A DNA stretch of 64,000 nucleotides from Mobula hypostoma (Eukaryota). The notes under the pieces are model-generated. The model worked only from the letters and a program-made list of their open reading frames with translations, had not been told where the DNA came from and searched no databases. A program made the position numbers and the translations under genes. The DNA lies in NCBI RefSeq assembly GCF_963921235.1, contig NC_086098.1, positions 24,180,001 through 24,244,000 on the forward strand, read 5' to 3'. Shown in pieces: positions 5,003 to 10,440 of the stretch (positions are counted from its first letter, which is position 1; every line of letters starts with the position of its first letter).

Positions 5003-5077
5003 ATGAGGGGTTTAAGAAAAACAGCTAATATTCAGATTTTATTCAGGGCAAAGGGAGATGATGGATCTTTTGTACAG
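5003..5077 (+). CDS. NCOA7: NCOA7 alternative first coding exon (NCOA7-AS/short isoform-like)
   Basis: Encodes MRGLRKTANIQILFRAKGDDGSFVQ (25 codons) followed by donor CAG/gtcagt in phase 0; resembles the 25-aa unique N-terminus of human NCOA7-AS as I recall it ([25 protein letters not shown]). Confidence 0.85.
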
Positions 5078-6149
5078 GTCAGTTATATTTTCTGAATTGA
5101 TTCAGTATAGGGCTTTTAAATACGTTTGTACCTAAAAAAGCATTTTTATAATTTTACTGTCAATCATGTATTTTCAATTTCTAAAGTTAAAATTTGACAC
5201 ACTAGTTTTCCTTTGTCATTTATGTGAGCATTTCAATTGTCTTAGACTTGTAGATATTTACAATATTTTACACAAAAATGATATTTGGAGTATTACAAGT
5301 ACTGTAAGGTTTATAAAAAAAAATCATATCCACATATGCCATTTTGTTTTCTGCTAGCGAATTTTCAGGTTCTTAGAAATAATTCTTTTTTCTTGCTTAT
5401 GTTGATGCTTTTAAGTTCATTGTAGTATGTTATGCTAATCTCGTAAGTGATATTTATAATGAAGAGAACCTATAGAAATTTAAAATACTATGATTATTAT
5501 GTGCTGCTGTAAAAATATTCTACATTTTTAAATGTTAAAAATAAGATTATTGAGTTTTAGACGTATTTGTGTATTGAGGCAGTACCTTAAGTGATAAAGA
5601 TTTAGAAAATAGCATGAAAATTTGGTTTTTAAACTTAATTAATCTAATACATAAAAAATATTATTTGAATTGCCTTACCAAATTGAAATGCTGAAAGCAG
5701 GAAATCAAAAAGTTTTGAACTTTTTCTCCACCCATGTGTTCTGAATTGTCAATAGTTATAATAAAAGAATGGTATAATAAAAGAAATTGGAGATAGCTGA
5801 TATTTTTGCATATAGTTTGAAACTCTGCTGCAAATGTGTAATTTTTAATTTTTTTTTGGCTCAGTGTGAACTTTAGTTTTAAGGAAACAGTTGCATAAAT
5901 TCAATGAGAACTAGGTGAAAAAAATGATAAATCCCCCTTGAGGTATGCTATTTTTTGTTATGTTGTATTTCTGCTCTTTTCTGAGAGCACTGATTCATTC
6001 TGGGTATTTTTGCCTCTCACCCAAGCATGAGTTTTAACAGTGTGCCACAAATTCATTGTGAGGAGGCGTTATTCCAAAGGCAAGATATATCTTGTAAAAG
6101 TTGAAAATATTAAATAGCAAATTGGCGATGGGAAACCAGAGTGTTGGAG

Positions 6150-6432
6150 AAATGGGAGCGTAGTGGTTAGTGTGATGTTTTTACAGTTCAGGACATTCCG
6201 GAGTTTGCAGTTCAATTCCGGTGCCATTCTGTAAGGAGTCTGTATGTCCTCCCCTTGGAGTGCATGAGTTTTCCCTGGGCACTCTGGTTTCCTCCCACAG
6301 TCCAAAGACATAATGAATAAGTTAAATAATGTAAATAGTCCCATGATTAGGTTAGAGTTAATCAAGTTTGTGGGGGGGTTGTGTGGCCTCGCTTGAAGGG
6401 TCTGCTTTGTGCTCTAACGCTGAATAAAATAA
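6150..6432 (+). mobile_element. tRNA-derived V-SINE
   Basis: Box A-like gtagtggttag, box B-like gttcaattcc, V-domain ctctggtttcctcccacagtccaaagac, A-rich end. Confidence 0.8.
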
Positions 6433-6480
6433 AAATGAAAACTTTGAAATGTGTTCAAGATTTTGAAATTGGTTTTCCAG

Positions 6481-6606
6481 ATCATCACTATTGAGGAAGC
6501 AAAACGACGCCAGAGCATAGGTAGTTTTTATGAAGAAGAGATAGAAGATCTTCAGCCTGTACTTACAGACCCCAGTGAACTGCTGGAGAGTTTCCACATT
6601 GAGAAG
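6481..6606 (+). CDS. NCOA7: NCOA7 exon preceding the TLDc core
   Basis: ttttccag acceptor; IITIEEAKRRQSIGSFYEEEIEDLQPVLTDPSELLESFHIEK; gtaaat donor; matches the NCOA7-type IITVEEAKRR motif. Confidence 0.95.
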
Positions 6607-6688
6607 GTAAATATATGAAACACTTTCTTGTGGTTGTAATCTTTAATAGATTGAGAAACCTGCTAATGAAATGCTTTTGTCATTATAG

Positions 6689-6841
6689 CTTATGCTGCAT
6701 CTTCCTGCAAGAACACAGGGATACGCCTGGCGCCTTATGTACAGCACAGCTGTCCATGGGACAAGTTTAAGGACACTTTACCGTAGTTTGGCTGTTATCG
6801 ATTCCCCAGTTCTCTTAGTTGTCAAAGACATGGATAATCAG
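6689..6841 (+). CDS. NCOA7: NCOA7 TLDc exon
   Basis: tatag acceptor; LMLHLPARTQGYAWRLMYSTAVHGTSLRTLYRSLAVIDSPVLLVVKDMDNQ; gtaaac donor. Confidence 0.96.
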
Positions 6842-6954
6842 GTAAACAACTTGAAATAATCTTAAGAAGCAAATCGACGGTGTATAATTTGCTGGCTAAG
6901 TTTTAGTATTGGTGTGTGTAAATTTGTGACCTATCATTTTTTTTCTTTTTGCAG

Positions 6955-7050
6955 ATATTTGGAGCTTTGGCATCACACCCTTTCAGATTAAGTGACCATT
7001 GTTTTGGTACAGGAGAAACCTTTCTGTACACATTTAATCCACAGTTCAAG
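6955..7050 (+). CDS. NCOA7: NCOA7 TLDc exon
   Basis: Polypyrimidine tract and gcag; IFGALASHPFRLSDHCFGTGETFLYTFNPQFK; gtatct donor. Confidence 0.96.
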
Positions 7051-7289
7051 GTATCTATTTTCATGCTTTTTTTTTTAAGAAAATTGGGTAGACCTGAGAA
7101 ATTGCCAGAGAGTCTCAAAGAAAAATTAGTCTGGAACTTCTTCACAGCATCTCACTACTTGCAGCCTTCCTACCTTATTCTCAGTGAAGCTGGTTGTAAG
7201 CCATTTTAAAATCACACAGAAAGGCTTTAACAATGTGGGAAATTGTCAAGTTATTCACTTCTGTAGAAAAACAGAAGTGTCTACTATCT

Positions 7290-7775: not shown

Positions 7776-7899
7776 AAAACTATGAAAATTAAACATGCTA
7801 TTAAATATTCAATGATTACATATGTTTCTAGTAAAAATAAAATGAAAGAATTAGGAAATTAAATACATTTAAATTTTGAACAAAATAAATTTGTAGATT

Positions 7900-8215
7900 T
7901 GAATCAGAATCAGGTTTACTAACACTGGCATGTGTTTGAAGCTTGTTTTGCGGCACCAGTATAAAGCTATATATAAACAATTGCTTTAAGTTACAACAAG
8001 AAGTTAAGAAAAGTAGTGCAAAAGGGAGAAAAATACTGAGGTAGTGTTCATGGGTTCGCTGACCATTCAGAAATCTGATGGCGAAGGGGAAGAAGATGTT
8101 CCTAAAATGTTGAGTGTGTCTTCAGGCTTCTGTACTTCCTCCCTGATGGTAGTAATGAGAAGAAAGCATGTTCTGGGTGGTGAGCATTCTTAATGATGGA
8201 TGCAAACTTAGGGCA
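7900..8215 (-). mobile_element. Rex1/Babar-type LINE 3' end
   Basis: Minus-strand IIKNAHHPEHAFFSLLPSGRKYRSLKTHST and (gattct)n tail. Confidence 0.8.
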
Positions 8216-8769
8216 TTTTACCAGAAACTTGTACGTTTCCACTGTATCATTGCACTCTGAAATTAATGGAGTTGCTAAATCTGCACCATGTATAACCTGG
8301 AACTGCTTCAGCTGGTAGATCTTCCAGTATAATAACTGGGAAACAGTTGAAATACTGCAGATTGTCATATGTTTCTATTCACAATTAGAATGGCATTGAA
8401 TTACCTTAATCATTATAGAGCAAATGCCAGCATTTTCTGTGTACAATTTCAGGCAATTTTATTTTTAGCTTGGAAATATGCATATGATTTGTGATGTAGG
8501 CTTATATAATGCTATGTTAAATTGCTGAATCAAAAGCTGTTTTGGGGCTGTTGTTGGAAAAAATATTCAAAGAAAAATATTTTAAAATACTAGATTGGCT
8601 GGTTTGATACTTGGTTTTTAATTTTAGAGGAAGATTGCAAGTTTTTTATTGGGATAATTATAAAACTAATGCCATAACATATCCTATGCAAGTATACTTG
8701 AAAAGCTTTTAATAGACACTACTGAAGGTGGGCTATATTGTAGATGTTCCATTGTCATGAATGTTGCAG

Positions 8770-9125
8770 AAGTTATTGAACAAAGAACACAAACTGTATT
8801 CTAATAAGGGTTTTATAGAGCTGCAACATTTTGCAACTCTTGAACTTAATCCCCCGACTAATGAAGGCCAACACACTATACGCTTTCTTAACAACCTTAT
8901 TATCTTTGAGGGATCTATAGACATGAACCTCAAAATCCCTCTGTTTCCCCCACACTAATAAGAATCCTGCCATTCAAATTCAACCTTCCAAAATGAATCA
9001 CTTCACACTTTTCCAGGTTGAACTCCATCTGCCACTTCTCATCCCTGTTTTGCATCCTTTCAATGTCCTGTTGTAATGTATGACAACCTTCTACACTTTC
9101 CACAACTCTGCCAACCTTCATGTCA
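8770..9125 (-). mobile_element. CR1 LINE RT fragment
   Basis: KWQMEFNLEKCEVIHFGR and VVKKAYSVLAFISRGI on the minus strand. Confidence 0.85.
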
Positions 9126-9286
9126 TAATTACAGTATGTGTTCAAATTAAGCATGTTTCCTACATTTAGAAATTGAAAATATGTAATTGGTTTGTGAAAC
9201 AGAATGAAAGTTCCATAGTAGAAAATCTGCCTGTTCTAATCTGTGAAGTAATTTGAATATAAGAATAATAGTGTTTTATTTAATAG

Positions 9287-9360
9287 ATATTTAGGTGGAG
9301 TGGAGAAAATTCGTATTTCATTAAAGGAGATAAAGACTCTTTAGAACTCGGTGGAGGAAG
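9287..9360 (+). CDS. NCOA7: NCOA7 TLDc exon
   Basis: taatag acceptor; IFRWSGENSYFIKGDKDSLELGGG plus AG (phase 2); gtatgt donor. Confidence 0.96.
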
Positions 9361-9684
9361 GTATGTACTCACATCATAATATTGTTTAACATATTTCTTG
9401 CATATTACCCTGCAAATTAGTATAAAATCATTTACATTATGTACATTACATATTAAAATAAGACTATTGCAATATCCTAGTGGACAGTTGTAGAAGGAGA
9501 ACAGCACATGGAGGCTACAACATGAGTCGTATTGTAGATGCAGAAATGGCCTTTCCAAGGAGGAAAAATTGGACTGATTTTTCAAAATCTTAAGGTGGTA
9601 TCCTGAGATAAATTTTATTCTTGCCAAAGTATCTTATAATTATATCCATTTAACATTTTTTTTGAACTGAGCAATATTTATTTA

Positions 9685-9935
9685 TTGTGATATGGTGCAG
9701 AATGGGCACTTCTGGCCCTTAGCCCAGCAATCCCCTGATTTTAATCTGAGCCTAATCATGGGATAATTTACATTGTCCAATTAGCTCACCAACCGGTACG
9801 TCTTTGGACTGTGGGAAGAAACTTGCACAGTCACAAGGAGAACATACAGACTCCTCACAGGCAGCGGCGGGAATTGAACCTGTGTCATCTGTACTGTAAA
9901 CCATTGTGCTAATCACTGCACTACTGTGCTGCCCA
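9685..9935 (-). mobile_element. V-SINE
   Basis: Reverse complement of the V-domain (gtctttggactgtgggaagaaac) and tRNA-like head (gggaattgaacc). Confidence 0.8.
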
Positions 9936-10304
9936 CAGTGTACATTTATGAAATTTCTCATGTTCAACAATATATGAATAAGGTGGATTGGAAAATCCCT
10001 TGTGCATTATACTCTAAAGATTCTAGAGCTAGAAGATTATGCTTTTTTGAGAACTCCGTTGAACAGACTGAACTAACTCAAGGTAGTTATACTTGGTAAA
10101 GTGGAAAATATTTCCTAAGACTTAGATCTGCATTTACCTCCTCATAAGAACAATGCTTCCTAGTGCTAATGAACGATTGTTTTTAATTAAGAAACCAAAG
10201 ATCAACTTTAACTGTAAATTTGAGAAGGAAACACAAACATGATGATGAATTTGTTGATGACTACTTTATATTCTAATAATCCAATAATATATTCTGTATT
10301 TCAG

Positions 10305-10440
10305 TGGCCATTTTGGCTTGTGGCTGGATGCAGACTTATATCACGGTCGAAGCAACCCATGCAGTACGTTTAACAATGAAACACTTTCAAAAAAAGAAGA
10401 CTTCATTGTGCAAGATCTTGAAGTGTGGACTTTTGTATAA
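10305..10440 (+). CDS. NCOA7: NCOA7 terminal coding exon
   Basis: tttcag acceptor; (S)[44 protein letters not shown] then TAA at 10438-10440. Confidence 0.97.

Follow-up and report, generated by a model that had tools for sequence, protein, structure and literature searches.

A promoter within the NCOA7 gene of the ray Mobula hypostoma drives a short transcript, in which a first exon of its own, 25 codons in length, is joined to the gene's final five exons to yield a product of 219 amino acids (aa). The gene lies in a stretch of 64,000 nucleotides (nt) of contig NC_086098.1 (positions 24,180,001 to 24,244,000, forward strand), hereafter called the window, whose own numbering is used throughout. 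The six exons very probably represent the ray orthologue of the short NCOA7 isoform, known in human as NCOA7-AS and in mouse as Ncoa7-B. That a short isoform exists in this ray, and that it is orthologous to the mammalian one, we consider close to certain.

Human NCOA7-AS is also 219 aa long, is induced by type I interferon, and is made from an internal promoter (PMC8329711). Its TLDc domain uses a loop with G91, a residue required for binding, to attach to V1 subunits of the V-ATPase (PMC13543948). Residues 4-36 comprise a hairpin (Q11-C15 and F23-I27) followed by a helix (V29-R35), and the hairpin is accommodated on the PX domain of the sorting nexins SNX5 and SNX6, where Y14 and V24 pack against F136 of SNX5. 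Other SNX5 cargoes carry either Tyr or Phe at the position of Y14 (PMC13543948).

Should the ray protein function as the human protein does, its first 28 or so residues would form a beta-hairpin with a hydrophobic-x-aromatic-x-hydrophobic motif (I12-L13-F14-R15-A16, together with F23 and V24), and this hairpin would dock on the SNX5/6 PX domain. At the C-terminus, the TLDc domain, with its G91 loop, would bind V1 subunits of the V-ATPase. Joint binding of SNX5/6 and the V-ATPase would then be expected to recruit the protein to endosomes, raise their acidification, and hinder viruses that enter by endocytosis. By analogy with the human protein, antiviral action in rays may equally well be present or absent, and we stand evenly divided on it.

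The short transcript and its N-terminal peptide

A preliminary description of this DNA had proposed that an ATG-initiated exon of 25 codons is spliced in phase to five exons of the TLDc region. The exon sizes and coordinates given there were correct, and only the borders have been refined (Table 1). All introns between the six exons have GT..AG ends, and the phases agree, in that 25+42+51+32 full codons are followed by 74 nt and 136 nt that split one codon between them. The spliced open reading frame (ORF) is thereby 660 nt, or 219 aa plus TAA. The ATG of exon 1 stands in the context GAGAAATGA, with an A at -3 and an in-frame stop 12 nt to its 5' side. Exons 3, 4, and 6 each exceed the curated Pfam cut-off for TLDc when taken alone, and exon 5 (24 aa) matches the next stretch of the profile weakly (E 0.09, 13 bits). 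Jointly, exons 3-6 span positions 16-169 of the 170 in PF07534. The 3' untranslated region (UTR) extends to about 11960, with AATAAA at 11909, giving about 1.5 kb of transcript beyond the stop.

Contigs from four public runs of a single study (X1, X2, X21, and X22) were placed on positions 4750-10700. The runs were guessed to be RNA, and because the contig records skip introns, they derive from RNA; such contigs can fix neither the start of transcription nor expression levels. The preliminary description had held that absence of a junction from 5077 to 6481 would be fatal to its proposal. This joint, with GT..AG ends, is present in the RNA-derived contigs of three runs (X2, X21, and X22), where it was output as 5074->6478 and the cut fits equally well three places to the right. 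The joints between exons 2 and 3, 3 and 4, 4 and 5, and 5 and 6 occur in contigs of all four runs. Exon 1 is covered from 4948 to 5074 in X21 and from 4974 to 5074 in X22, each contig then continuing into exon 2, and the 5' UTR is at least 55 nt long; transcription would be expected to begin somewhere from the CCAAT box at 4887 to position 4948. At the other end, a contig of 2108 nt extends 1659 nt onward from 10303, covering exon 6 and the 3' UTR.

Exon 2 is also used by the long isoform of the gene. In X1 and X21, contigs carry a loose end before 6479 that runs ...CCTAAAAGTTGGG and then AG|ATCATC, reading ...PKSWE|IIT, and the junction sequence of the long isoform is ...AAAGTTGGGAG|ATCATC. 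This loose end is the upstream exon of the long isoform (…FSDPVPKSWE) spliced to the acceptor that exon 1 also uses. In X1, the long-isoform joint alone was assembled. Because both joints at the exon 2 acceptor are found in contigs, the long and the short isoforms are both made. The upstream exon of the long isoform was not found within the window and lies beyond its 5' end, which makes the promoter-bearing intron more than 6.4 kb long.

When searched alone against the PDB, the 25-aa peptide of exon 1 gave no match at E <= 10 because it is too short. For exon 3, the best PDB sequences were human NCOA7-AS (7obp, the top match), NCOA7 (7uzg and 8ar6), and mouse Ncoa7B (7uzj_T), and the alignment of exon 2 with 7uzj_T begins at residue 26, right after the 25-residue N-terminus. 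A longer N-terminal query was taken from residues 1-60 of P0282, a near-identical Mobula protein, and compared with the PDB by phmmer. Residues 1-58 align with residues 1-60 of 7uzj_T, starting from residue 1 (E 5.4e-10), and residues 7-35 align with the human NCOA7-AS peptide in the SNX5-NCOA7 chimera 9iae/9igy (E 0.004). The preliminary description had likened the peptide to the NCOA7-AS N-terminus by means of the pattern MRG.R....IQI...A......FV. The computed alignment to 7uzj_T bears this pattern out, and the likeness holds for both the mouse and the human forms.

The peptide had also been expected to be conserved in other chondrichthyans, and it is indeed kept in elasmobranchs and in the holocephalan Callorhinchus. 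Across seven other cartilaginous fishes, 15-25 of the 25 residues of exon 1 are identical to those of the window (Mobula, 25/25; other batoids, 21-23/25; sharks, 17/25; Callorhinchus, 15/25). Relatives were reached first by matching exon 3 against 1.8 billion representatives, which gave P0033, a lemur NCOA7 fragment whose first 67 residues align without gaps to the ray product, then by a search with P0033, and finally by cluster listings, which gave the cartilaginous forms. The P0033 search returned short NCOA7 isoforms of 217-230 aa, all of which start with a peptide of 21-28 residues, belonging to one family, immediately before IIT(V/I)... Their hosts are mammals, birds, squamates, a caecilian, a salamander, frogs, lungfish, paddlefish, and many teleosts. 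In the teleost forms, the equivalent exon reads MKLLPENIKVLYFA..EPYVE.

When 34 short isoforms are aligned, no variation is seen at V24 or I26 and very little at N9, A16, and I27, and every sequence has F or Y at position 14. The ray keeps I12-L13-F14-R15-A16, F23, V24, I26, and I27, as well as G91, G121, and G172. The conserved residues of exon 1 are those that contact SNX5 in the human protein, a pattern that purifying selection on the interface would explain, and we infer that selection has probably acted on an SNX5-type interface in the ray as well. An AlphaFold2 model of P0282, computed with 34 homologues, is confident in the TLDc domain and includes helix 29-35.

The ray form can thus be compared in some detail with human NCOA7-AS (NCOA7 isoform 4) and mouse Ncoa7-B (PDB entries 7uzj/7uzk, 7obp, and 9iae/9igy). 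The gene is orthologous and the product equal in length, with its own first exon of 25 codons joined in phase 0 to an exon starting IIT(V/I)EEAKRR. Also shared are the positions of the hairpin motif (an aromatic residue at 14, F23, V24, I26, and I27), the helix at 29-35, a complete TLDc domain with G91, and elements resembling the interferon-stimulated response element (ISRE) about 110-180 bp to the 5' side of the ATG. In contrast, where the human protein has Y14 and E21 the ray has F and G, and the ray ISREs are imperfect. Identity to the mammalian form is about 69% overall (151/219 to Cervus) and 8-10/25 in exon 1. Interferon induction, binding of SNX5/6 and the V-ATPase, and antiviral activity have been demonstrated for the mammalian proteins only. 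A second 219-aa NCOA7 model in Callorhinchus (P0273; XP_007897463.1) begins with an unrelated first exon of 25 aa (MKNVGCVFACSMKRHVATFEKMHEM).

Table 1. Promoter elements and exons of the short NCOA7 isoform in the window
Feature	Position	Strand	Remarks
ISRE-like element GAAATCAAAACT	4827..4838	-	1 mismatch to GAAANNGAAAST; -176 from ATG
ISRE-like element AAAAACGAAAGT	4843..4854	+	1 mismatch to GAAANNGAAAST; -160 from ATG
CCAAT box	4887..4891	+	within conserved block AGCCAATCAAGTACA; -116 from ATG
Minimum 5' UTR part of exon 1	4948..5002	+	contigs of X21 (from 4948) and X22 (from 4974)
Alternative first coding exon	5003..5077	+	25 codons, MRGLRKTANIQILFRAKGDDGSFVQ; donor GTCAGT
Exon 2	6481..6606	+	42 codons, IITIEEAKRR...; common to long isoform
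Exon 3	6689..6841	+	51 codons; TLDc begins; contains G91
Exon 4	6955..7050	+	32 codons; TLDc
Exon 5	9287..9360	+	74 nt; TLDc
Exon 6, coding part	10305..10440	+	136 nt; TLDc end; stop TAA 10438-10440

Orthology and the paralogues of the ray gene

The ray genome holds three close paralogues, namely the gene in the window (on contig C2), one on C1, and one on C80. Their relationships were examined with a maximum-likelihood tree of the TLDc part, comprising 42 rows and rooted by invertebrate outgroups. The window gene and other cartilaginous genes labelled "NCOA7-like" fall within the NCOA7 clade, beside all NCOA7 of bony vertebrates (support 97/95), and the C1 paralogue clusters with named OXR1 sequences (99/98). 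The C80 paralogue forms a separate third branch together with Callorhinchus A0A4W3JBD9 and a Pristis protein named "NCOA7 isoform X2" (100/99). Forcing this third branch to unite with bony-vertebrate NCOA7 was rejected by the approximately unbiased test (p-AU 0.028). On this phylogenetic evidence, we assign the window gene as the true NCOA7 orthologue and not as OXR1. Some 20 kb downstream of the gene, at 29960-30079 on the plus strand, there is a HIT-domain exon (…FACFRDIRPGAPHHYLVVPRKHVGNCKSLKKE) that is HINT3-like; HINT3 is the downstream neighbour of NCOA7 in human.

The third paralogue (G000:C80:11330135-11338567, minus strand; also P0087 and P0332) was seen in three cartilaginous fishes (the ray, Pristis, and Callorhinchus), and none of the bony-vertebrate sequences sampled belongs to it. 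Its existence reveals a naming problem, in that the protein called "NCOA7" by NCBI in Pristis is this third paralogue, and the true NCOA7 orthologue of cartilaginous fishes bears the name "NCOA7-like". In the Callorhinchus model of the third paralogue, the first exon closes with ...KIIYKANGEHGPFVQ, a sequence that looks homologous to the hairpin of NCOA7-AS. A search for such an exon in the 39 kb upstream of exon 2 on ray C80 gave nothing above noise, and the short form of the third paralogue in Pristis (P0332) has a different start exon.

The OXR1 paralogue deserves separate mention because its short isoform (Oxr1-C type) has a similar layout, with an internal first exon of about 24 codons spliced to the exon that precedes the TLDc domain, and this arrangement is conserved from skate to turtle. 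Short OXR1 isoforms of this kind were seen in a skate, a chimaera, turtles, a newt, and a teleost (P0338, P0342, P0341, P0345, P0347, and P0335). They share a dedicated first exon that encodes about 24 aa (identical or similar to MSRLWYGKKGRKHQ.INHKYTL) and is attached at a splice site equivalent to that of NCOA7 exon 2. The peptide differs from that of NCOA7 in having no evident SNX5-type motif, and the isoform is not known to be interferon-induced. An identity of the window's isoform with short OXR1 was considered and rejected, because OXR1 of this genome is the C1 gene and the exon 1 peptide in the window is of the NCOA7 type, not MSRLWYGKKGR...KYTL. An alternative first exon of OXR1 was not found in the 10 kb upstream on ray C1.

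Because the OXR1 splice position is equivalent to that of NCOA7 exon 2, the internal-promoter layout is common to both paralogues, and OXR1 has an equivalent layout in every jawed-vertebrate group sampled. It is possible, though we would not expect it, that the layout (an internal promoter and, in phase 0, a first exon of some 25 codons spliced to the exon just before the TLDc domain) is older than NCOA7 itself, a view that also draws on the hairpin-like first exon of the third paralogue in Callorhinchus. If so, the short TLDc isoform, and perhaps the SNX5/6-binding hairpin too, would predate the vertebrate genome duplications, and interferon control would have been added or retained on NCOA7 only.

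Promoter elements and competing explanations

Two ISRE-like elements and a CCAAT box lie just to the 5' side of the transcribed part of exon 1. Such an arrangement suggests that the transcript would be raised by interferon, and we regard the ray isoform as probably interferon-responsive. Sites were scored as ISRE-like if they had at most one mismatch to GAAANNGAAAST, and were counted between -300 and -40 from the ATG in eight lineages (ray, Callorhinchus, Rhincodon, Megalops, Anguilla, frog, rodent, and bird). With a counting interval chosen once the data had been given an initial inspection, and with elasmobranch loci that are not mutually independent, 10 sites were observed against 0.8 expected from the background of each locus (Poisson ~1e-8). 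Six of the eight lineages have such sites, located between -108 and -176, and perfect sites are present in Callorhinchus, tarpon, frog (two), rodent, and bird. Across the whole window, ISRE-like sites are no more frequent than chance predicts (18 versus 15.6 expected).

The promoters of the ray, the whale shark (Rhincodon), and the elephant shark (Callorhinchus) can be aligned, and both the ISRE core and the CCAAT block are conserved. In this three-species alignment, the core AAA.CGAAAGTT of the site at 4843..4854 is invariant, and the site at 4827..4838 falls within a stretch that Rhincodon and Callorhinchus also conserve. Rhincodon has an identical copy of the CCAAT block AGCCAATCAAGTACA, and Callorhinchus, Megalops, and Anguilla have similar ones. 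Among non-tetrapods, interferon control of an NCOA7 orthologue is documented for zebrafish ncoa7a, which is listed among the interferon-stimulated genes (ISGs) orthologous to human ISGs (Levraud et al., 10.1101/693333 supplements), a listing made at the gene level and for a bony fish only.

Several observations weigh against an interferon-induced NCOA7-AS in the ray, including the after-the-fact choice of counting interval. Both ISRE-like sites of the ray carry one mismatch, and in Rhincodon and Anguilla the equivalent place holds only GAAA-repeat versions that are more degenerate still. The junction of exons 1 and 2 occurs in three samples that were apparently untreated, with a contig depth about half or more of that of the exon 2-3 joint, which would fit constitutive use too. 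Within the protein, E21, which forms a salt bridge in human, is G in the ray, and the AlphaFold2 model of P0282 shows no hairpin in residues 1-48, where the per-residue confidence score (pLDDT) is about 40. The short isoform could accordingly be real and yet serve in rays as a constitutive or tissue-specific regulator of the V-ATPase, with no meaningful interferon or antiviral role. The ISRE-like sites would then be weak or non-functional in rays, and the isoform would be comparable to short OXR1, whose first exon is likewise separate and conserved and which is not known to be under interferon control (PMC8038996). This explanation has to contend with the equivalent spacing of ISRE-like sites in most lineages, five of which have perfect copies, with a promoter block conserved across the split between holocephalans and elasmobranchs, and with the status of NCOA7 as an ISG in both human and zebrafish. 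We therefore consider it rather improbable.

Two further explanations concern the identity of the gene and the exon. If the gene were OXR1 or the third cartilaginous paralogue, the likeness to NCOA7-AS would be paralogous. The names invite this suspicion, since NCBI calls the gene here just "NCOA7-like" and gives "NCOA7" to the third paralogue in Pristis. The tree, however, separates all three ray genes with high support, the union of the third branch with bony NCOA7 is rejected, and the HINT3-like exon stands downstream, as HINT3 does at the human NCOA7 locus, leaving paralogy highly improbable. Exon 1 might also be an accidental ORF, or the result of noisy splicing, from which no protein is made, and it is admittedly short and finds nothing in the PDB by itself. 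Against this, its length, phase, and position are constant in jawed vertebrates generally, V24 and I26 are invariant in 34 species, identity remains 15/25 even in Callorhinchus, and the junction was recovered from three runs. As far as sequence and RNA evidence reach, the chance-exon explanation is already refuted. The ray orthologue of NCOA7-AS thus continues to be the reading we prefer.

Repetitive sequence occurs within and around the gene. Three intronic segments (6143-6341, 8929-9127, and 9725-9923), where all four runs show many loose ends and a very high summed depth of contigs, are interspersed repeats. Those near 6160-6310 and 9790-9900 look like oppositely oriented copies. Reverse-transcriptase-like ORF fragments on both strands at 1-1560 and 31600-36100, such as an ORF of 236 aa at 35321-36031, are retroelement debris flanking the gene.

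Age and significance of the short isoform

The preliminary description had suggested that this isoform and its internal promoter arose before cartilaginous and bony vertebrates separated. This idea is now well supported because the ray gene is the true orthologue, the first exon is shared, and ISRE-like elements occur at equal distance upstream in most of the sampled lineages. An equivalent first exon is found in mammals, birds, reptiles, amphibians, lungfish, paddlefish, and teleosts.

The isoform itself is not new. NCBI annotates a 219-aa form in Mobula birostris and in at least six other cartilaginous fishes, the hosts being M. birostris, Pristis, Hemitrygon/Hypanus, Scyliorhinus canicula, S. 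torazame, Hemiscyllium, and Callorhinchus. The M. birostris record, "NCOA7-like isoform X4" (XP_072107670.1), is identical to the window product at 218 of 219 positions. Other 219-aa RefSeq models sharing the exon 1 peptide family are those of Pristis (XP_051881005.1), Scyliorhinus canicula (XP_038655683.1), and Callorhinchus (XP_007897462.1), and the Callorhinchus form already stands in an old GI-numbered "PREDICTED" RefSeq record. These cartilaginous models are automatic predictions titled 'NCOA7(-like) isoform X..'.

A literature search that combined NCOA7 with shark and teleost ISG terms found no paper on the isoform outside mammals, and none linking the cartilaginous RefSeq models to NCOA7-AS. 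Nor did it find a paper stating the deep conservation of the SNX5/6 contacts and the promoter, or correcting the names. Our addition is therefore incremental, and consists of the explicit link to NCOA7-AS, the tracing of both the SNX5/6-contact residues and an ISRE-bearing promoter, as conserved features, to the ancestor of jawed vertebrates, and, as a by-product, the naming correction of NCOA7 and "NCOA7-like" in cartilaginous fishes. The advance is modest, given the public gene models, a human mechanism already described in print, and the earlier listing of NCOA7 among the ISGs that zebrafish and human have in common. It confirms an ancient feature that was to be expected rather than revealing a new one.

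What the ray sequence indicates is that a package composed of an ISRE-bearing internal promoter, a first exon of 25 codons with the residues by which the human protein binds SNX5/6, and a TLDc domain that would bind the V-ATPase predates the last common ancestor of jawed vertebrates. Such an age would place NCOA7-AS among the oldest interferon effectors, and rays and sharks could be used as comparison species for its mechanism.

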